IMG/VR virus record: IMGVR_UViG_3300050014_000823 | Span: 186,001-250,000 of that record | Strand: one strand, 5' to 3' | DNA: 64,000 nt | Part shown: positions 32,671 to 41,355 of the stretch, piece after piece | Layout of the letters: the number at the start of each line of letters is the position of its first letter | Numbering within the stretch: position 1 is the stretch's first letter | The notes under the pieces: model-generated | Database searches by the model: none | What the model was told of the DNA's origin: nothing | What the model saw: the letters and a program-made list of their open reading frames with translations, nothing else | Position numbers and translations under genes: made by a program

Positions 32671-32703
32671 AAAAAACCCCGTAAGATTTCTCCTACGGGG
32701 TTT
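32671..32703 (-). terminator. Rho-independent terminator after the ARPP-like gene
   Basis: aaaccccgta...tacggggttt stem followed by a T-run on the minus strand. Confidence 0.75.
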
Positions 32704-32721
32704 CGATATACTTATTCAATC

Positions 32722-33819
32722 TTATAGACTGAAATTTTTCTGCTTACGAGCCTTCTTACGAAGTTCGTTTACTTCCCTGTATGCGTCAGGATTAAACCTT
32801 TCACGCTTAACAACTGATACAAGGTGATTGAATTCGTTCTCAGTAATTACCTGTCCGATATAACCTTCTGCCTTGAGAACATAAGATTTGGGAGCACGGA
32901 GTGACTGAGACTGACCTTCGGTATCAAGTTTTGCTTCGAAGGTTAAATCAAGAATTTCTTGAATCTTTTCAGTAACATCAGCAGTCATTTTAGCTTTTGT
33001 CTGCTTCAATGCTCTTTCAAGCAAATCAACAACATTTTCCCTGTGAGTCTGCTTCAATTCCTCATATGTCTGAGTAAACTCATTCATAGTAGTTTTGTTC
33101 TTCAACTCACTAATAATTGCCAATGAACCGTAGCAGTCACGAATCATTAAATCCCATACCTGTTCAGCGTATGTGAATGAAGGAAACTTGTCTATTGCAA
33201 CAATCTCACCATCAATCAACACGATGATACCAATCAAGTTCTTTGGACGTTCAAAGTGTGCAATGAACTGTTCAAGTTTCTTGTCGAACTTCTCGAAGTA
33301 GATGTTCAAGTAGTTACCAGTACCAGACTTGGTATCTACACCTAACTTCTGAATAGCAGGGTAAATATTACCGTGACCTGATGTCTGACCAACTGCATCA
33401 AACAACATTTCACGCATAGATACGGGAATCATACGGAATTCCTGAGTTCCACGGAAGTATCCGGTCTGTCCACCTTGTACACAACCTGCGTCATGGAAAG
33501 TTGTCTGAGCACGTGGCTCAACATAACCAGCCTTTACCATACCGTGGTTCTGTGCCTGTTGCTTAGTTAAAACAGCCATCTGAGTAGGAAGAATAACTTC
33601 CTTATCCTGTTGGTTGGTAAACGTGATTTGACCATAGGTAGAGTTACTTGACACCAATGATGTCAAGGGATTCGCAAAGCGAGTATCCAATGAAAACTCA
33701 GCATCGGTTGTAAGGCATACAATCTGCATATTTAATATGCTTTGTACAATAATATTACCATCTTTATCTTTGACAGGACGGCAACCTTTCAATAATTCTG
33801 AAAAATCTTTTGTATTCAT
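32722..33819 (-). CDS. ARPP-1/DUF6569-like protein
   Basis: N......VILP......QAQNH......YV.P......AGCVQ.G core and a GIIVLIDGEIVAIDKF C-terminal segment; recognised from family patterns, not by search. Confidence 0.6.
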   Translation of the reverse strand: MNTKDFSELLKGCRPVKDKDGNIIVQSILNMQIVCLTTDAEFSLDTRFANPLTSLVSSNSTYGQITFTNQQDKEVILPTQMAVLTKQQAQNHGMVKAGYVEPRAQTTFHDAGCVQGGQTGYFRGTQEFRMIPVSMREMLFDAVGQTSGHGNIYPAIQKLGVDTKSGTGNYLNIYFEKFDKKLEQFIAHFERPKNLIGIIVLIDGEIVAIDKFPSFTYAEQVWDLMIRDCYGSLAIISELKNKTTMNEFTQTYEELKQTHRENVVDLLERALKQTKAKMTADVTEKIQEILDLTFEAKLDTEGQSQSLRAPKSYVLKAEGYIGQVITENEFNHLVSVVKRERFNPDAYREVNELRKKARKQKNFSL

Positions 33820-34376
33820 AACGTATTGATTTTAATGTTATTAATTTCACACTCTAATTTATATGCATTAAATGCTAATTCTTCTGTTTCAAATCTACCT
33901 AAAAATTTTGTTTTACCTTGAATGTTAATTCTTGAAATCCAAGGTTTTTGATATTTTTCTTTAACATACGATACTCCAACATATTTACTACTACTTTTCA
34001 TTTTTGTTCTCGCATGATGAGTATTTTCTCTTGAAGTGCACCATTCTAAGTTAGAAGAAAAATTATTTTTCTTATTTCTATCTTTATGATTTACTTCATC
34101 CAAATTATTTGGATTAGGAATGAATGCTTCTGCAATTAATCTGTGTAAACAAAATGCTTTATTTATACAATTTTTCGATAAAGTAACCAGCACATATTTA
34201 CCTTGATTAATAAACGTACCTTTCAACGAACCCTTCAGTCTTCGACTGACACCATTTCTGTTAATTTCATTTCTATCCAAACTTCTAACTCTTCCAAAAT
34301 TACTTATTTGATAATAACCCTCATATCCGACAACATCTTTCCAATTTTCAAACAATATTCTTGGGTAGTGAAACAT
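33816..34376 (-). CDS. NUMOD4-HNH-AP2 homing endonuclease
   Basis: WKDVVGYEGYYQISNFGRVRS (NUMOD4), HRLIAEAF...VNHKDRNKKNN (HNH), SKYVGVS...LGRF.TEELA..AY (AP2). Confidence 0.9.
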   Translation of the reverse strand: MFHYPRILFENWKDVVGYEGYYQISNFGRVRSLDRNEINRNGVSRRLKGSLKGTFINQGKYVLVTLSKNCINKAFCLHRLIAEAFIPNPNNLDEVNHKDRNKKNNFSSNLEWCTSRENTHHARTKMKSSSKYVGVSYVKEKYQKPWISRINIQGKTKFLGRFETEELAFNAYKLECEINNIKINTL

Positions 34377-34388
34377 ATTAATTTGCGT

Positions 34389-36032
34389 TTAAGCGTTTAC
34401 ACTAATTTTTTTAATTCTCTTAACAGGAGCAGCTTCAAGAGCAAGAACCTGGTTTTCAAGCCAACGTTTGGTGTCAATTTCAAGTAACCTTGCGTTAATC
34501 TGTGGCTGTAAAGCTGCAGGGTTGTTAATTGCCATTGTGACAACACCCTTACCTAAAGTCCTTACATTAGCACCCATTTCGGCACTGGTAATCGGTGAAA
34601 TCTGGAATGTTGGTACACTCCTTCCACTTTCTGCTTGCCAGATTGAGATAACTTCGTTAGTCAATCCATCGTAAGCGTTTTCGTAACCATCGGTTAAGAT
34701 GAAAATTGCATCGTATGGCTTTGAAGGGTTTTCTTCCTTCAAAAGTTCAATAAATGCACTTGCAATATCACTTGCAAAACCTTTAGTATCAACTCTGTTA
34801 GATTCCCTTGCAGATGCCATAAGAACCAATGAAGTGAAATCTGCAATTGCCCTTGGGGTATTCTTTGATTCGGTCTTGTCACCTGTCATTGAGATACTAC
34901 CGTCAACAATAATACCGATATTCTGGTAGAAGAAACCTGCAATTTTCTTTTTATCTGCAAGTTTTACAATTGCTGACCTTAATTCTGGTGTGAAAGTTGT
35001 TTCATAACCAGTTTTGTAAAGTGCAAGGAAGTCTGTTGCCTTTTCAACCTCAACGTGTTTTTCAACACCGAGTTTTGCGGTTGATTTGGTCTGACGGACC
35101 TGCTGGTTTACAGAAGTTACCTTCACATTCTTACGAATGAGTGCCTTTGTAGCTTCTCTCTGAACCTTAGTTGACCACAATGAGTGATACTGAGGGTGTG
35201 AAGTACTTGCAACCATACCGATAAGAACTTCTTCCGGTACTGAACTTACAGAAGTAATGTCAGTTTTTGCCTTCTGGTATTCTGACAAAAGTGGAAATTC
35301 GTTTGCAGGATACTGAACGCCAACAAAGTTAGCACCACAATCCCTCTTGAACAAGAACATCAATAACTTATATGCACGAGTATCACTACCGTTAAAGTAC
35401 TTGAGAATGTTCTTAGTTGCAATTGTCAATTCCTTGTCACTTCCGTACAAACCATTTGTGATTATGTTCTTCTGTGCAATTGAAAGCAATACTGATGTCT
35501 TTTTAACACCATAAACGTGACGTAAAATCTGAGCAATCTTGTTACGGTACTTCAATGAGTAGAATTCCAAGTTAGTTTGACCCCAGATAAAGCCAAGAAT
35601 GATTTTCCTTGACCTTTCGTTGTTAATCTTAGCATCCTTTAAGTCTACGAAAAGACGTAATACATATGGAAGACCGTTTTCACCCAAGTTGTTGAGTGCG
35701 GTAAGAACTGCCTTATCACTAAGACCATTATCATACCAGTCGATTGGATTAACAATATTACATGCGCCACCCTTCAAAGTATTTTTAAATTCGTTTAAAA
35801 GTACCTCAGACACGAACTGTCCAGTCGCACCCTTTTGACTTGCTATAATCAAAGGGAGTTCCTTAGAAAGACCGTACATCTTCTTGATTTCCTTCTGGAG
35901 AGCAATTGCTTGCTCATCCCTGCTGTGGTAGTAAGTTGCTGATGCTTTGCTACCTGATGCTGTGGTAAGACCGTCAATCAGTGTCTGTTTAACGCTTACA
36001 AGCATTTTCTGTGTTAATACCAACTTTTCCAT
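34389..36032 (-). CDS. Helical N-terminal domain plus C-terminal vWA domain protein (TROVE/Ro60-like architecture)
   Basis: MIDAS motifs IIVDGSISM and IFILTDGYEN; ~370-aa basic helical N-terminal region (INNERSRK, KYRNK); 547 aa, similar in size to Ro60. Confidence 0.65.
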   Translation of the reverse strand: MEKLVLTQKMLVSVKQTLIDGLTTASGSKASATYYHSRDEQAIALQKEIKKMYGLSKELPLIIASQKGATGQFVSEVLLNEFKNTLKGGACNIVNPIDWYDNGLSDKAVLTALNNLGENGLPYVLRLFVDLKDAKINNERSRKIILGFIWGQTNLEFYSLKYRNKIAQILRHVYGVKKTSVLLSIAQKNIITNGLYGSDKELTIATKNILKYFNGSDTRAYKLLMFLFKRDCGANFVGVQYPANEFPLLSEYQKAKTDITSVSSVPEEVLIGMVASTSHPQYHSLWSTKVQREATKALIRKNVKVTSVNQQVRQTKSTAKLGVEKHVEVEKATDFLALYKTGYETTFTPELRSAIVKLADKKKIAGFFYQNIGIIVDGSISMTGDKTESKNTPRAIADFTSLVLMASARESNRVDTKGFASDIASAFIELLKEENPSKPYDAIFILTDGYENAYDGLTNEVISIWQAESGRSVPTFQISPITSAEMGANVRTLGKGVVTMAINNPAALQPQINARLLEIDTKRWLENQVLALEAAPVKRIKKISVNA

Positions 36033-36086
36033 AGTGAATGTTTAAAAATTTACATTACAATTATTAATAAAAAACATTTCAGAGTG

Positions 36087-36116
36087 CAAATATACTATTA
36101 AATCTGAAACATCAAA
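36087..36116 (-). promoter_or_regulatory. Bacteroidota sigmaA-type promoter (TTTG-N18-TATATTTG) for the vWA-HNH-ARPP operon
   Basis: caaatata at 36087-36094 and caaa at 36113-36116. Confidence 0.65.
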
Positions 36117-36125
36117 ACATATTCG

Positions 36126-36186
36126 AAAAAAAAAACAAAAAAAATGGGCGAGTAGACACATTTCTATGTCAGTCCCCGCCCATTTT
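36126..36186 (-). terminator. Terminator closing the ncRNA operon
   Basis: aaaatgggcg...cgcccatttt stem followed by a long U-tract on the minus strand. Confidence 0.75.
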
Positions 36187-36216
36187 CTCTTCGAAAAACA
36201 CTTCTCTCTATTAAGG

Positions 36217-36310
36217 AGAAGAAGTTTAGTTGTAATTTGGTAAGTTTGTCCCTCTTCTTCATGAGAGGGATTACATTTTTCAATCTACTGTATTCACAAC
36301 AAGTTCTTCT
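36217..36310 (-). ncRNA. Handle-RNA unit 1 (Y-RNA-like; hairpin cargo)
   Basis: 5' AGAAGAACTT-GTTGTGA-ATACAGT pairs with 3' TTACAAC-TAAAC-TTCTTCT; internal TCCCTCT/AGAGGGA hairpin. Confidence 0.6.
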
Positions 36311-36552
36311 GTCAAATTGCTGCTTCAGGTGGCACGCTCCGAAGAACCCGACATCTACTCACAACAATATGTCTTTTTTTATGAAAAAATAAGCACTTCT
36401 GCTTAAAAAACCATTCTTAATCATCAAATGTTAGGCGACACGCCCCGTTTTTTGTAAAAAACACTCTGGTGCCGACAGCCTAAAAACTTCAAGCGGTGGG
36501 GTTTACTTGATTTAATTTAAATTTGGTTTAACCCTTACCACTTTTAAAACTT

Positions 36553-36707
36553 GGGGAACATTTTAATAGTATTTGTTGTTTTTCTTTTGATAGTTTAACT
36601 GACTATTGACTTTACCACTTGTCTACTTCCCCAAATTTGTTTTGTTATTTGTGGGGAAGGAAGGACTCGAACCTCCGATATTACTGTAAACACTTTTAGT
36701 TTTCCCT
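36553..36707 (-). ncRNA. Handle-RNA unit 2 containing a circularly permuted tRNA-Asn(GTT)-like domain (YrlA-like)
   Basis: Order on the minus strand: handle, T arm GGAGG-TTCGAGT-CCTTC, acceptor 3' CTTCCCC, linker, acceptor 5' GGGGAAG, D arm GAC-AAGTGGTAAA-GTC, arm ATAGT-CAGTTAA-ACTAT, handle complement. Confidence 0.75.
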
Positions 36708-36718
36708 TCGTATCTTCA

Positions 36719-36807
36719 CCCGAAAGTTTGTGTTGCCACAGGGACAGTCGGGAATTCCAGAAACACGGTTACTTTACTTTCGTAAGAGGCTTTTCCGTGC
36801 ATACCTG
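36719..36807 (-). ncRNA. Two GNRA-capped structured hairpins within the ncRNA operon
   Basis: CACGG..TTAC-GAAA-GTAA..CCGTG and CCCGA..TGTG-GCAA-CACA..TCGGG. Confidence 0.45.
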
Positions 36808-36816
36808 AAAAATTTG

Positions 36817-36925
36817 TGGGGAGAGCAGGCTTCGAACCTGCAAATCATTGAGTTCAAATCAATTGCTTTACCTTTTACTGAAAACACAATCAGTTCTCTC
36901 ATCTAAGAGAGCAGTGAGTATGTAT
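36817..36925 (-). ncRNA. Handle-RNA unit 3: hairpin-closed handle fused to the 3' two-thirds of a tRNA (anticodon loop TTTGAAC)
   Basis: CTCTC-ttagat-GAGAGAACTGATTGTGTTTTCAGT, then GGTAAAGC, ATTGA-TTTGAAC-TCAAT, GCAGG-TTCGAAG-CCTGC, TCTCCCCA. Confidence 0.6.
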
Positions 36926-37090
36926 ATTGAAATTGGATTATGGTCTACATGAGAATGAGCGTGTTATCAGCATAATCCTTAACCAACCTTATTTTCTCAA
37001 TTAGATGTAAAAACTCAAAAAAATCAATATATTTGATAAGTTTTCAATATAGCCATACGAATAAAGTTTTTTTAATTAAAAGTGGTTAAA

Positions 37091-37417
37091 ATGACAAATC
37101 AAACATTCAGTGGACAATTGGGTTTTGTTATTAAAAAAATCCACGCAATTAATAAAAGCGGAAAATGGTTCTATTTTTTTAGCAATACCGATATAACTAA
37201 TACTATTTCAAATAATTACAAAATAGTTGGTGTTGATGTTAATATATTCTCTATCACAAATAACTTAAAAACGTTAATTGATATTGTTGGCTCTTTGAAA
37301 ACCAATGATAATGAATTAAATGATTTATCTATAGAACCATACCCACTATTTAAAATTCCTGAAATAACTCAAGAGAATTCTTCTGAGGAATGGTATCTGA
37401 TATTTATTACAGGTTGA
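37091..37417 (+). CDS. Hypothetical protein (inserted in the ncRNA region)
   Basis: ORF only; overlaps the 3' end of an opposite-strand ORF. Confidence 0.35.
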   Translation: MTNQTFSGQLGFVIKKIHAINKSGKWFYFFSNTDITNTISNNYKIVGVDVNIFSITNNLKTLIDIVGSLKTNDNELNDLSIEPYPLFKIPEITQENSSEEWYLIFITG

Positions 37418-37639
37418 TGCCTTATCCCATTCTGGAATTAGATTAATTATTCTTTTAATATTTTTTTCTGGAGTCCAACAACTAAGTAATCCATTCTTAG
37501 TTATATCAATATTAAAGTAAACATGCAAAACATTATCACTTGAATAACCGTGATATTTATAGTATGCAAAGAACACTCTCCTTTCATACCATCGTAGTAG
37601 CCAATACATAAATTTATTAACTGGATTATATTTTTTCAT
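37346..37639 (-). CDS. Hypothetical protein (MKKYNPVNK...)
   Basis: ATG at 37639 preceded by a GTATTTATA motif at 37654-37662. Confidence 0.45.
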   Translation of the reverse strand: MKKYNPVNKFMYWLLRWYERRVFFAYYKYHGYSSDNVLHVYFNIDITKNGLLSCWTPEKNIKRIINLIPEWDKASTCNKYQIPFLRRILLSYFRNFK

Positions 37640-37661
37640 TATTGATATATAATTATAAATA

Positions 37662-37910
37662 CTAATAATAATTATTAGCAAAACCACCAATTGCCGTTTT
37701 GTTTAAAAAGAGTTTGTTCAATTCATCTTTACTGGGTAAATACCAATCGCTATAGCTACCTAATACCAAATCAGAACACAATTTTGCAGCATAGTTTCCT
37801 GCCCCCTGATTACTGACTACAGTGTTTGTGTTCGCATTTCCAGTTCCCAATCCTGTTGCTGTTGCCCCTGTTGTAGTATTAGTTCCATTATACCATTGTA
37901 TACCTGTACT
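37662..37910 (-). pseudogene. Fragment of a DUF1566/Lcl-C (C-type lectin fold) gene
   Basis: STGIQWYNG..TGATATGLGTG..NT...AAKLCSDL...YSDWYLPSKDELNKL...GGF.NNYY*; no in-frame ATG; stops where YWSS is expected. Confidence 0.65.
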
Positions 37911-37956
37911 ATAGTATCTTTTGTTTTATTTTTGCTATCTCCCCATATTAATACTT

Positions 37957-37968
37957 TGTTAAAGAACG
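37957..37968 (-). promoter_or_regulatory. boxA-like antitermination element (CGTTCTTTAACA)
   Basis: Near-match to the rrn boxA TGCTCTTTAACA; similar sites at 39006-39018 and 39168-39179. Confidence 0.55.
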
Positions 37969-37979
37969 TTTAAAAATTT

Positions 37980-38057
37980 AAGAAGAATTTCGTCAGTCTT
38001 GTTTTGTAGTTTTCTGATTTGCCGTCAAATTTACTGTAAACACCAACAGTTCTTCTT
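37980..38057 (-). ncRNA. Handle-RNA unit 4 (minimal)
   Basis: AAGAAGAACT-GTTGGT-GTTTACAGT ... ACTGAC-GAAA-TTCTTCTT; small TTTG-acgg-CAAA hairpin cargo. Confidence 0.6.
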
Positions 38058-38139
38058 TTATTTCTCGAAATCTATTGGCGCAGTCTTCTTGTGACTTACC
38101 TTTGTCGGAGTGTTATGCCGAGACCATTAAATTTCATTG

Positions 38140-38212
38140 TAGCGTTGGACAGGACTCGAACCTGTGATTCCGAGCTTATGAGGCTCGTGAGATGCCGCTT
38201 CTCTACCCCGCT
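38140..38212 (-). tRNA. tRNA-Met(CAT), initiator-like 5' end, imperfect acceptor stem, CCA not encoded
   Basis: AGCGGGG-TA-GAGA..TCTC, anticodon arm CGAGC-CTCATAA-GCTCG, T arm ACAGG-TTCGAGT-CCTGT. Confidence 0.8.
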
Positions 38213-38958
38213 ATATGCTTCTCAAAATTTTCAAATTCCTTTGTTACAAAGGATTTATCGAATTTTCCTAAATCTTTTATAACATATGGTTCATACCCAC
38301 AACCAATAATTTCTTTAATTTTTAATTTATCTCTATTCTCTGTTTGTAATAATGAATGATTTTTCGATATTTTCTTATAATGCCAAGCACCATTCCATAA
38401 TACTGCAATTTTATAATCTTCTATAATTACATCTGCATCCCATCCATTAAAAATTTGTTCATTACAAAGAACCAACTTAAATTTCTCACAACATAATTTA
38501 GCAAAATATATTTCGTTTTTACTTCTTTTATTTTGTGATTTTACAGAACATAAACCACCAATTCTTTCATACCCTTTCAGTGGCATTCGGAATTTTGTGG
38601 CACATGAATGTCCACAAAATCTTTGGTTTACTTTCTTCTGTTCAAAACTATTTTCACAATATTCACAATTAATAATTTTAACCTTTTTGTTTTTTAATGA
38701 AAGTTTATCTTTTGTTCCTTGTGAATGTACTCTCTTATTAGCACAGCCTCGTGAACAATAATATATTTTCTTTTGTGGGTGTAGTTTTTCACGTTCATTT
38801 ACAATAAAAATTTTAGCACATGAAATACATTTAACCGAATAATCAACAAACTTACCATATTTTTTATCATTTTTTTGAGTATTTTGAAACTCATTTTGAC
38901 AAGAAACATTACAAAATTTATTTTTTACCAATTTTCCACAATTCAAACAATTATTCAT
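38203..38958 (-). CDS. Putative homing endonuclease: CxxC zinc-finger repeats plus a PD-(D/E)XK/Vsr-like domain
   Basis: Three C..C...(F/Y)C...C repeats; WDADVIIEDYKIAVLWNGAWH; own late motif at 38972-38980; last codons overlap the tRNA-Met 5' end. Confidence 0.7.
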   Translation of the reverse strand: MNNCLNCGKLVKNKFCNVSCQNEFQNTQKNDKKYGKFVDYSVKCISCAKIFIVNEREKLHPQKKIYYCSRGCANKRVHSQGTKDKLSLKNKKVKIINCEYCENSFEQKKVNQRFCGHSCATKFRMPLKGYERIGGLCSVKSQNKRSKNEIYFAKLCCEKFKLVLCNEQIFNGWDADVIIEDYKIAVLWNGAWHYKKISKNHSLLQTENRDKLKIKEIIGCGYEPYVIKDLGKFDKSFVTKEFENFEKHIAG

Positions 38959-39028
38959 AATACATATTTATTATAAATACTGCGGACTTTTAAATCGAAC
39001 CATAGTTTTCAAAGAACATTATAAGGTA

Positions 39029-39154
39029 AAAAGGATAATTCGTTTGTTATTTTTGTTTTAAACAATGAGGTTTCGACACCCCAACATTCTGCCTGAAAAG
39101 CGGACACTCTACTTTGAGTTAATTGTATACTGTAATAACGAACAGTTTCCTTTT
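39029..39154 (-). ncRNA. Handle-RNA unit 5 enclosing a degenerate cloverleaf (anticodon loop TTTTCAG, Glu-like)
   Basis: AAAAGGAAACT-GTTCGTTATT-ACAGT ... AATAACAAAC-GAATTA-TCCTTTT; inside: ACAAT/ATTGT stem, ACTC-aaagta-GAGT D arm, TCCGC-TTTTCAG-GCAGA arm, degenerate T arm. Confidence 0.65.
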
Positions 39155-39167
39155 GTATTTTAAATCT

Positions 39168-39230
39168 TGTTAAAGAACATTTGTCATTTCGGACGATGCA
39201 AACATAATACACTTTTATTTAACATGCAAG
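39168..39230 (-). promoter_or_regulatory. SigmaA-type promoter (TTG-N20-TATGTTTG) followed by boxA-like TGTTCTTTAACA, driving the ncRNA operon
   Basis: caag 39227-39230, caaacata 39199-39206, tgttaaagaaca 39168-39179; a late-type motif also lies at 39276-39284. Confidence 0.65.
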
Positions 39231-39324
39231 TGTTTTCTGAAAAAAATTAAAAATATTTTTACTATCGTCTGGGATTATAAATACGTAATAGTTTTAAAAA
39301 AGTTACAAAAAAATATAAAAATTT

Positions 39325-41355
39325 TTATCTTAATCTTATATCTTCCTCATTTACACGCATTTTACCCAAGTAATCAAACACATGTTTTTGGTCAGAACTT
39401 ACTTCATCGGGGTCAATTAACAACTTTTTTTCTGCCTCACTAAGGTCAATTTTTTTCTTAGAAATCGGATTTTTATTCACATTGCTGACCATTTCGTGCA
39501 CAGATTTTCGAACTTCTGGCTCAATTTTCGGCTTAATATCTTCGAATTTTACCTCAGTTTCATTCGTGGCAGTAGTAAAAGTTTCTCCCGACCAATTTAA
39601 TAACTCTGGTTCTACACCATCATTTACACCCTCACTTACACCATCATTTACACCATCACTTTTTTCAATAGGTTTGTCTTCAAGTATGAATTTATCGTCA
39701 CTTGCTTCCTCATTTGCACCCTCATTTGCACCCTCACTTACACCATCATTTACACCATCATTATTATCTATTTCACGTGTTGAGATTCCCGGAGATACAA
39801 ATTGTGAAGTATCTATGGGTTTCTTTTCCTCGATATTTTCTGATTTTATATATGCACTTCTCAATAACTCGTCTTCCGCAGTTAATCCCCCTGCATTGCT
39901 TACAAGAGTATTAAATAAACCACCCGGAGAATGAGATTCAATTGATTCTGCTTTTCCAGCTATTACATCTTCACTATATTTTTTCTTTACACTATATGTT
40001 GTACCTACATATCTTTCGTCAGTAATTTTAATTTCCATTGTATCGTTGTTAAAGATACAGTCTTTAAATGTCTGACCGTCTTTAGCAAACCTTGCCTTAA
40101 TAATACGTATACTTGCGAGACTTGCTTCTTTCTGGTCAGGAGTTTTAGCTACCGACATAAAGAAGTGTGCTTTCTGTACTCTCTTGATGTTACCACCAGA
40201 CTGATGCGCCTCAACGAGTTCAGCATCAAAACCTGAACGATTACTCTGAATTGCAGACCAACATGGAATGTCAAAATCACTTGCCATTGCTTCAAACGAC
40301 TTAACAATTTGAAGTTCAGCCTCATTACGGTCATTGACTTTCTTGTGAGATTCTAAACAATCAAGATAGTCAAGTATAATAATATCGAATTTAATACCTG
40401 TTTTTTTCTGTTCTCTGAGAATCCAGTCTTTAATATCCGTCATTGTGGTATTTTCCTGGCTGAACTTTTTCACTTTAAGTTTACCCGGATTCATGTGTGC
40501 AATATGGTCATTTGCCTTTTGAAGTGCTTCGTCATTTCTTTCATCGAGTTCACTTAAAGGTATTCCTGTCCAAATAGTAACATGCTTTCTCTTAATTTGT
40601 TCTTCGGTATCCTCAAAAATAATCTGACATACATTATAATCATGTGCACGTGCAGTATTGGCAATTTTAGTCAGTAATGTTGTTTTACCAACACCTGAAG
40701 GAGTCAAAATTAATCCAATTTCGCCTTTACCCAATCCACCACCAGTAAGTGTGTCAATAACACCAACACCAGTAGGAATTGTTTTACGAAATTCTTTCAT
40801 TAGTGCTTTGTCAAGACCCTCTGTTGCATCACTACCATTATCTTCTGTATTGCCGATAAGTGCAATTTTTTGCATTTTTTCGTCAAACTCAGGTAAGAAG
40901 GTCTTGCTACGAATCTCACCTGTTTTTACTTTTGCAAGAACACCCTCTGCCCATTTGCGTATTTCTTGCTGTTTAATAAATTCAGTAGTTGCCTGTTGAA
41001 CAACTATTCCATCGTGCATTAAAGTCTGATTGAGAATTCTTTCATTCCACAACTTAACTCTTTCGATTACAGCAAAAAGTGATTCTTCCTCAATAACATT
41101 ATTGGGAGATTTGAATTCGTTTATGGCTTGGATTACACTCTGATTCTGTAGATTAGGTACTTTACCGTATCTCTTGACGTATTCCAACATAATAAGGAAT
41201 AACCTCTTTATGTTAGGGTCATCAAAGTATTCTACTGCTAAGATTGGTATTGTTCTCTCGGCATATTCTGGTTCAACCAGAAGTTGCCACAATAATTTTT
41301 GTTGAAATTCCGGACCTTTGTATGCCGTTAAGGTATTATCTAATTGTTCGCTCAT
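39325..41355 (-). CDS. Replicative DnaB/T4 gp41-like helicase with an acidic C-terminal extension
   Basis: IPTG...D....GG...GE; Walker A PSGVGKT; IILDYLD; SAIQSNR; IKARF. Confidence 0.92.
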   Translation of the reverse strand: MSEQLDNTLTAYKGPEFQQKLLWQLLVEPEYAERTIPILAVEYFDDPNIKRLFLIMLEYVKRYGKVPNLQNQSVIQAINEFKSPNNVIEEESLFAVIERVKLWNERILNQTLMHDGIVVQQATTEFIKQQEIRKWAEGVLAKVKTGEIRSKTFLPEFDEKMQKIALIGNTEDNGSDATEGLDKALMKEFRKTIPTGVGVIDTLTGGGLGKGEIGLILTPSGVGKTTLLTKIANTARAHDYNVCQIIFEDTEEQIKRKHVTIWTGIPLSELDERNDEALQKANDHIAHMNPGKLKVKKFSQENTTMTDIKDWILREQKKTGIKFDIIILDYLDCLESHKKVNDRNEAELQIVKSFEAMASDFDIPCWSAIQSNRSGFDAELVEAHQSGGNIKRVQKAHFFMSVAKTPDQKEASLASIRIIKARFAKDGQTFKDCIFNNDTMEIKITDERYVGTTYSVKKKYSEDVIAGKAESIESHSPGGLFNTLVSNAGGLTAEDELLRSAYIKSENIEEKKPIDTSQFVSPGISTREIDNNDGVNDGVSEGANEGANEEASDDKFILEDKPIEKSDGVNDGVSEGVNDGVEPELLNWSGETFTTATNETEVKFEDIKPKIEPEVRKSVHEMVSNVNKNPISKKKIDLSEAEKKLLIDPDEVSSDQKHVFDYLGKMRVNEEDIRLR
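39612..39760 (-). repeat. 12-bp-unit coding tandem repeats (GVND/GVSE/GANE) in the helicase tail
   Basis: tacaccatcatt / tacaccctcact / tgcaccctcatt units in two clusters. Confidence 0.75.

Follow-up and report, generated by a model that had tools for sequence, protein, structure and literature searches.

Conservation of Ro60/Y-RNA particles reaches from bacteria to humans. In them, the exterior of the Ro60 ring holds the bulged terminal stem of a Y RNA, whose remainder recruits partners such as PNPase. To our knowledge, what the tRNA-like module of bacterial Y RNAs is for has yet to be established. We describe here a locus within a 64,000-nucleotide stretch of DNA (positions 186,001 to 250,000 of IMG/VR virus record IMGVR_UViG_3300050014_000823, hereafter the window) from a jumbo phage, with related contigs of up to 300-360 kb and an IMG/VR contig of 299 kb that has the same sequence, in which an array of five small RNAs sharing one stem module lies upstream of the genes for a 547-aa protein with a predicted Ro60-like fold and for an ARPP-1 protein. 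Phage Ro60 proteins with Y-like RNAs encoded upstream have been described before (PMC4201824, PMC12135203, PMC7824862), and the present locus is probably a Ro60/Y-RNA-type ribonucleoprotein (RNP) system of a divergent and as yet unannotated lineage. The trio of Ro-like protein, ARPP and RNAs occurs in phages as well as in Planctomycetes, Myxobacteria and Bacteroidota and has the look of a sister lineage of the Ro60/Y-RNA particle that has gone unrecognised; this assignment is based on computed results for the fold, the RNA structures and the co-occurrence of all three components, and our search of the literature returned no published description of the lineage.

The locus shares its overall plan with the described systems of Ro60 (Rsr) and Y RNA/YrlA, such as Salmonella rsr-yrlBA, those of M. 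smegmatis and mycobacteriophages, and Yrl1/Yrl2 of Thermus phage phiLo: a protein of ~530 aa that is helical and then vWA with a MIDAS (metal ion-dependent adhesion site) motif, small RNAs just upstream on the same strand, and RNA units whose two ends pair into a long stem interrupted by an internal loop. Unlike Ro60, the protein has no detectable sequence similarity to TROVE, and unlike Y RNAs the units carry RRRAC, 8-11 variable nucleotides and WUHCAG in place of GNCGAA, a departure from the Ro60/YrlA consensus already suspected in a preliminary description of this DNA made from its letters. Furthermore, tRNA-shaped cargos carry the module at any of three positions, which Y RNAs do not show, and in contrast to Ro60/YrlA loci with their one or two RNAs, there are three to eight RNAs per locus here (most often four to six) and the bacterial copies lie inside long tRNA arrays. 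Finally, where Ro60 systems have RtcB or PNPase as partner, the obligate partner here is ARPP-1. The RNA units and the two partner proteins are the following, in window coordinates and, like all locus features below, on the minus strand:

39029..39154, minus strand: unit U5 (type D), an H1/H2 closing stem around a full cloverleaf tRNA mimic (39128-39060)
37981..38056, minus strand: unit U4, a closing stem and a short non-tRNA cargo (RNAalifold, 36 orthologues)
37911..37944, minus strand: 5' piece of unit U3 (type C), with the 7-nt acceptor 5' strand and the start of an A-rich hairpin
36814..36925, minus strand: 3' piece of unit U3 (type C), with a local H1 hairpin, the motif, anticodon arm, T arm, acceptor 3' strand and an ACAA tail
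36554..36706, minus strand: unit U2 (type B), a closing stem and a circularly permuted tRNA mimic
36217..36310, minus strand: unit U1 (type A), a closing stem and a GC-rich hairpin cargo
34389..36032, minus strand: Ro60-like protein, 547 aa, with a helical N-terminal domain and a C-terminal vWA domain
32722..33819, minus strand: ARPP-1 protein, 365 aa (PF20208)

According to its predicted structure, the 547-aa protein is a very divergent Ro60-like protein, with a predicted ring. Its AlphaFold model (pLDDT 93.5, pTM 0.91) was compared with known structures using Foldseek, and the 12 best matches in the PDB, at E = 8e-7 to 9e-4 and a probability of 1.00, are all Ro60/TROVE proteins whose alignments span the full length (~580 columns), including Xenopus, human and Deinococcus Ro60 and the Ro60 of Thermus phage phiLo; non-Ro matches begin at E = 0.03, with alignments that cover no more than about half the length. 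In the viral structure library BFVD the model matches a TROVE protein and, from Gordonia phage VanLee, a Ro-like RNA-binding protein, so that Ro60/TROVE proteins are the only significant full-length matches in either library, as expected from the divergent Ro-like protein proposed in the preliminary description. The MIDAS residues D377, D448 and G449 are invariant among 89 homologues, and S379 and S381 are conserved in at least 90% of them. A HMMER scan of 1.84 billion cluster representatives returned 293 relatives, mostly of 500-550 aa, which make up a family of ~290 clusters (50% identity) unrecognised by current domain libraries, and among GenBank phages the single homologue is found in the uncultured 462-kb phage LR756500.1.

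The RNAs of the array are related to each other by a common motif, found in the window at 39147-39128, 38051-38033, 36895-36877, 36701-36683 and 36305-36287. The preliminary description had listed five such strings as the starts of five RNA units; all five are present, on the minus strand and, within the window, just in the array region, and comparative analysis shows the motif to be the 5' strand of a long closing stem rather than a self-contained start signal. A strict 20-nt consensus has three matches in the 64-kb window versus 0.02 expected, with none on the plus strand. Conservation was measured on 241 unit sequences from 75 related phage loci, the set used for all phage counts given here: the five bases 5' of the motif are purines in every unit, motif positions A0, A1, C2, G8, U9, U13, C15, A16, G17 and A19 are 96-100% conserved, and the 5' consensus reads RGRAR-AACU, four variable nucleotides, GUKUUUWCAGUAA. 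The resulting module consists of a helix H1, formed by the 5' purine run with a run of pyrimidines at the unit's 3' end, an asymmetric internal loop with AAC(U) on its 5' side and ~5-7 bases such as RAAAU on its 3' side, a helix H2, in which motif positions 4-12 pair with the segment just 5' of the pyrimidine run, and a junction, where the invariant UWCAGUAA leads single-stranded into the cargo. Compensatory changes in H1 and H2 are seen in four unit types as well as in Planctomycete units, and wherever the closing-stem search found both 3' strands, the spacing between them is almost always 10 bases. A local hairpin formed by the motif itself (ACUGU with ACAGU) was rejected because its 5' half varies without compensation while its 3' half never varies. 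Single-sequence minimum-free-energy folds of the units were uninformative, and a generic closing-stem score did not discriminate units from shuffled controls in AT-rich phage DNA; per-type alignments were therefore used as the basis of the structures described below.

In these alignments, one module carries several predicted cargos, attached at the acceptor end, between the anticodon and T arms, or in the D-arm region, in agreement with the earlier suggestion of one handle presenting several cargos, and including a YrlA-like permuted tRNA mimic. Type D (U5) holds a complete cloverleaf: over 42 orthologues (alignment A2), 93.2% of cells are paired with 22 compensatory pairs, against 39-56% in slid controls, the U5 cargo scores 36.4 bits against the Rfam tRNA model and passes its threshold, and cargos of this type are called tRNA by ARAGORN in relatives. 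The U5 cargo sits inside the closing stem, so that free acceptor ends would require processing, and the type D anticodon differs from phage to phage (Thr CGU, UCA, AUC, Asn GUU, Ile UAU). Type B (U2), with 97.8% of cells paired and 24 compensatory pairs over 43 orthologues (alignment A3; slid controls 37-55%), is circularly permuted and runs in the order T arm, acceptor 3' strand, short loop, acceptor 5' strand, D arm and anticodon arm. All 7/7 pairs of its permuted acceptor helix are compensatory, its T and D stems are 100% paired, and most units encode NCCA after the acceptor 3' strand. The T arm, loop-closed acceptor stem and D arm thus stand in the same permuted order as in YrlA, and the 7-bp acceptor resembles that of M. 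smegmatis YrlA, with CCA encoded in some copies. The arrangement also recalls the permuted and split tRNA genes of Cyanidioschyzon merolae and Nanoarchaeum, with the 3' half of type B upstream of its 5' half and type C split in the window; unlike those genes, the units show no bulge-helix-bulge motif, their anticodons are not conserved, and the permuted body is held by a conserved, putatively protein-binding stem.

Type C (U3) is tRNA-shaped with normal ends; in place of the D-arm region it has an A-rich hairpin and the module, whose H1 is capped by a loop. In 43/44 orthologues the acceptor 5' strand lies at most 85 nt upstream and forms 7/7 pairs, with 12 covarying variants, and the H1 hairpin, which covaries, has 5/5 Watson-Crick pairs in 28/45 orthologues; this local hairpin was preferred to an alternative in which the H1 5' strand would pair with the segment following the T arm. 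The window's U3 gives a partial Rfam tRNA match of 27.5 bits, below threshold. Here the preliminary description needs amending: the motif of its third unit is present, and the unit is interrupted by an insert of ~1 kb that leaves the 5' acceptor strand at 37944-37911. The two halves are contiguous in 43/44 orthologous units, the window's own phage being the sole exception. The two remaining types carry small non-tRNA hairpin cargos only. For type A (U1), RNAalifold predicts 25 pairs over 39 orthologues, 11 of them compensatory, and recovers the same closing stem without a prior structure; for the U4 type, likewise without a prior structure, H1 and H2 are predicted over 36 orthologues with 3 compensatory pairs.

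The link between these RNAs and the Ro-like gene extends well beyond the window. The motif lies on the same strand and ~3 kb or less upstream of the Ro-like gene in 74/75 phage loci. Cellular homologues were collected by a scan of one genome per species, which yielded 62 loci (one of them, L078, comes from a metagenome-assembled genome bin and is a contig of the phage clade to which the window belongs), and by exact protein look-up of two more contigs, for 64 further loci in all. Carriers include Planctomycetota (Rhodopirellula, Stieleria, Novipirellula, Thalassoglobus), Myxococcota (Minicystis rosea, Haliangium, Polyangiales) and Bacteroidota (Saprospiraceae, Chitinophagales, Microscillaceae), with further carriers in other groups and complete chromosomes among the loci, and bacterial homologues with an upstream motif share 25-30% identity. 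A stricter first cross-phylum pattern found almost nothing, and a loosened one was used (three purines, AC, 8-11 bases, WUHCAG). In the 1 kb upstream, on the coding strand, this loose motif occurs at 1.16 per kb versus 0.04 per kb elsewhere, with 63 matches against 2.2 expected (28-fold) in 31/56 further loci, and the recurrence of the motif near homologous genes anticipated in the preliminary description is thereby borne out. Alignment of 13 Planctomycete units gives a closing stem that is 95.7% paired, with 7 compensatory pairs and slid controls at 18-46%, and permuted type B units were recognised by eye in several cellular loci.

Bacterial pairs of Ro-like and ARPP genes often lie within same-strand tRNA arrays (24, 16, 13, 40 and 27 tRNA genes in loci of 9 to 11 kb: L085, L088, L083, L091 from Minicystis rosea and L127 from Haliangium), which in Minicystis rosea flank the pair on both sides. 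These same-strand arrays of 13-40 tRNA genes around the bacterial homologues resemble the described L-arrays (PMC8421152), as do the interspersed homing endonucleases, which are also present in this phage locus; unlike here, tRNA-like RNAs and a von Willebrand/vWA protein are not mentioned in the paper describing those arrays (PMC8421152). As a separate observation, ARAGORN makes a tmRNA-like call over the start of the Ro-like gene of Minicystis rosea (L091, 4686-5236), which is probably a false positive caused by a tRNA-like unit.

The second constant neighbour is ARPP (ARG and Rhodanese-Phosphatase-associated protein). The family assignment of the window's protein is clear (PF20208, E = 3.7e-15, 56.5 bits versus a cut-off of 27), its structural model is confident (pLDDT 87.1), and the residues invariant among 38 sequences include Q90, H92, C113, R136 and E190. 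ARPP-1 is a predicted Cys/His/Gln enzyme and the candidate partner of the Ro-like protein. In each of the 63 phage loci with enough downstream sequence, the ARPP gene lies directly 3' of the Ro-like gene across a gap of ~15-45 bases, and it is directly downstream in 57/64 further loci, nearly all of them cellular. Among the seven loci without ARPP, the contig ends too soon in five, and L138 and L139 have room downstream of the Ro-like gene and no ARPP match. In one GC-rich contig the Ro-like protein and ARPP-1/ARPP-2 are joined in one polypeptide of 884 aa (P0265, L076 1122-3776), and two module-bearing tRNA-like RNAs lie upstream of the fusion gene. The partnership suggested in the preliminary description is thus seen both as a constant neighbourhood and as one fusion. 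ARPP proteins have been predicted to act as enzymes on sugar or ribose moieties and are described in two-gene neighbourhoods and phage-host conflict contexts (PMC9503650). Like the proteins of those conflict systems (Iyer et al. 2022, PMC9503650), the window's protein has the PF20208 domain with its conserved Cys and Gln, and it differs from them in context, the neighbourhoods reported there being ARG-centred or with HIRAN, WYL or deacetylase genes and a TROVE/Ro-like partner not being mentioned; the present locus gives ARPP a first RNA and protein context. PNPase was disregarded as a fold relative of ARPP, as the top rows had E of at least 0.13 and a probability of 0.04.

Several results weigh against assigning the locus to the Ro60/Y-RNA type. 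By sequence, the 547-aa protein has no match in Pfam, PHROGs, NCBIfam, PDB sequences or a PDB profile search, apart from weak vWA profile matches (VWA_2 and VWA_CoxE, E ~4e-4), and the Pfam TROVE profile (PF05731) gives 0 matches in 89 aligned members even at E up to 1, nor does it match any of 10 distant homologues. Superposition of the model on Ro60/TROVE structures yields template modelling (TM) scores of 0.36-0.53 and root-mean-square deviations of 8-12 A; at such TM-scores, the Ro60 architecture is common to the modelled protein and its predicted geometry is different. A GNCGAA(N)G or CGAA Ro-binding motif was not found near the 5' end of the units, CGAA being seen on the 3' side only, in about half of type D and U4 units, and an Rfam scan of the window and 15 cellular loci found tRNA (RF00005) as the sole family at threshold. 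In type C units, no partner was assigned to the H2 strand, and ~45% of the further loci with upstream sequence have no match to the loose motif. On the side of the partner, ARPP-1 has no significant fold relative in the PDB, and we know of no activity established for ARPP.

From the structures and the co-occurrence we infer binding, RNA processing, ARPP activity and a biological role as follows. One promoter, together with boxA-like antitermination elements, would drive transcription of the five small RNAs and a tRNA-Met up to a strong terminator. The operon transcript would then be cut into single RNAs, with the tRNA-Met and the tRNA-like ends as places where RNase P and RNase Z could plausibly enter. 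The module of H1, loop, H2 and junction is, by analogy with bulged Y-RNA stems, the probable binding site of the Ro60-like protein, and the tRNA-shaped cargos may engage tRNA-handling or tRNA-cleaving proteins, with ARPP as a putative enzymatic arm. A particle holding tRNA-shaped RNAs in this way could recruit, repair or divert tRNA-handling enzymes, damaged tRNAs or tRNA-cleaving nucleases during infection. A role in tRNA surveillance, repair or decoy is favoured because the anticodon loops vary freely and because of the tRNA-array context, and a tRNA-centred role is likely. The ARPP partner and the tRNA arrays both point to tRNA metabolism, a question that is testable in culturable Planctomycetes and Myxobacteria, and the lineage offers a natural experiment in which one putative protein-binding stem is placed on tRNA shapes in three orientations. 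It also suggests that structured non-coding RNAs are deployed in arrays by jumbo phages. More tentatively, and with the odds somewhat against so broad a statement, these loci may belong to a second widespread Ro-like RNP lineage, made of ring, ARPP and modular tRNA mimics, that travels with tRNA arrays and jumbo phages and protects, repairs or impersonates tRNAs under nuclease attack, its stem module letting the ring hold a tRNA shape from three sides.

A more specific version of the Ro60/Y-RNA assignment, which does not exclude it and which we consider possible though rather unlikely, holds that the tRNA-shaped RNAs are decoys for anticodon nucleases or tRNA-targeting toxins, stabilised or recycled by the Ro-like protein and ARPP. 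It would account for anticodon loops that change fast on an otherwise conserved scaffold and for the three module positions on the tRNA shape, each of which exposes different parts, and it agrees with the linkage to long tRNA arrays that are horizontally transferred (PMC8421152) and with the description of ARPP in conflict systems (PMC9503650), but the bacterial copies would need another rationale, namely self-protection.

We think it improbable that the units are simply precursors of ordinary phage tRNAs, with the closing stem as a leader-trailer duplex guiding RNase P and RNase Z and the proteins either unrelated or acting as precursor chaperones. Such precursors would fit the tRNA calls made for type D cargos by Rfam and, in relatives, by ARAGORN, the genuine tRNA-Met in the same operon and the NCCA end of most type B units, and M. 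smegmatis YrlA itself is cut by RNase P and receives CCA (PMC4201824). However, orthologous cargos differ freely in their anticodons between related phages (Thr, UCA, AUC, Asn, Ile, Glu), tRNA cargos are missing from two unit types, the tRNA shape is permuted in type B and without a D arm in type C, and the motif tracks the Ro-like gene across phyla.

Far less probable still is that the protein is a generic vWA co-chaperone of the MoxR/CoxE type or a virion assembly factor next to the RNA array by coincidence: vWA chaperones are known in jumbo phages (PMC7824862) and weak vWA profile matches are all that sequence comparison returns for the protein, but there is no gene for a MoxR ATPase between the RNA array and ARPP, Ro60 proteins are all that the helical N-terminal domain matches, and the link between RNA motif and gene is kept in distant phyla. 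As for the motif being a DNA-level signal such as a phage promoter or operator rather than an RNA element, a short conserved sequence recurring in an intergenic region might evoke one, and we give this hardly any credence given that the motif is on one strand only, that its flanks covary with distant 3' partners as RNA helices do, and that its copies lie inside one transcription unit with one promoter-like site and one terminator.

The Ro60/Y-RNA-type trio is embedded in further features of the locus, which in the window are as follows:

39197..39209, minus strand: TAnnTTTG promoter box (Bacteroidota-type -7) for the RNA operon, read from the sequence, its promoter role putative
39167..39179, minus strand: boxA-like element 1, matching the 13-nt boxA-like pattern exactly
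39006-39018, minus strand: boxA-like element 2, a pattern match
38203..38958, minus strand: inserted open reading frame (ORF) of 251 aa, Cys-rich, between U5 and tRNA-Met
38141..38211, minus strand: tRNA-Met (CAU), Rfam tRNA at 44 bits
37956-37968, minus strand: boxA-like element 3, a pattern match
36926..37910, minus strand: insert of ~1 kb splitting U3, with small ORFs inside
36800-36763 and 36752-36719, minus strand: two motif-less hairpins between U3 and U2
36126..36186, minus strand: intrinsic terminator of the RNA operon, from folding energy and shuffles
36085..36097, minus strand: TAnnTTTG -7 promoter box for the protein operon, likewise read from the letters and of putative role
33816..34376, minus strand: HNH homing endonuclease between the two partner genes (Pfam NUMOD4 and HNH_3, PHROG 59)
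32673..32704, minus strand: terminator-like hairpin closing the protein operon, a 14-pair stem then a T run
32594-31878, minus strand: second homing-endonuclease gene, flanking ARPP (PHROG 559 match)

The preliminary description had placed much of this frame correctly. The 547-aa helical and vWA ORF, the HNH insert and the ARPP ORF are as it gave them, and a TAnnTTTG box lies in both of the promoters it proposed, which remain candidates by sequence; a sigma-70 scan found 26 sites versus 26.5 in shuffles, with a model that does not cover Bacteroidota promoters. Its boxA-like sites are present at three positions, and across the 75 related loci such boxA-like sites number 0.44 per kb within the array region versus 0.03 per kb elsewhere (~15-fold). 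The strong terminator that it saw folds at -31.4 kcal/mol (z = -5.8, 0/200 shuffles as good) and is followed by a U run, and the tRNA-Met that it reported in the operon, recognised by Rfam and missed by ARAGORN in the window, has an orthologue that ARAGORN calls in 10/12 related loci.

Inserted genes are unevenly distributed among the relatives. The 251-aa ORF, whose stop codon overlaps the 5' end of tRNA-Met, is found in 13/75 related loci with 54-100% identity (at least 86% in all but one) and has a 76% nucleotide match in Prevotella phage Lak-C1; this patchy presence together with the Lak-C1 match suggests a mobile element, judged from sequence to be probably a homing-endonuclease-like gene. 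The HNH/NUMOD4 gene occurs in 9/75 related loci and the PHROG 559-type homing-endonuclease gene in 25/75. Within the U3 insert (37910-36926), one small ORF has a weak match to Lcl_C (PF07603), and in the Rfam scan no group I intron or other Rfam family accounts for the insert.

Upstream of the RNA array, in the window (39325-41355) and in related loci, there is always a DnaB-like helicase gene and a conserved 203-aa gene, which places the locus within the replication module of these phages. The helicase match covers just part of the gene in several relatives, where more inserts may be present. The 240 nt that separate U2 from U1 (36553-36311) may hold additional RNAs. Finally, one of the two motif-less hairpins between U3 and U2 contains a small hairpin capped by a GAAA tetraloop, and sequences resembling these hairpins follow the type C unit in some related loci.

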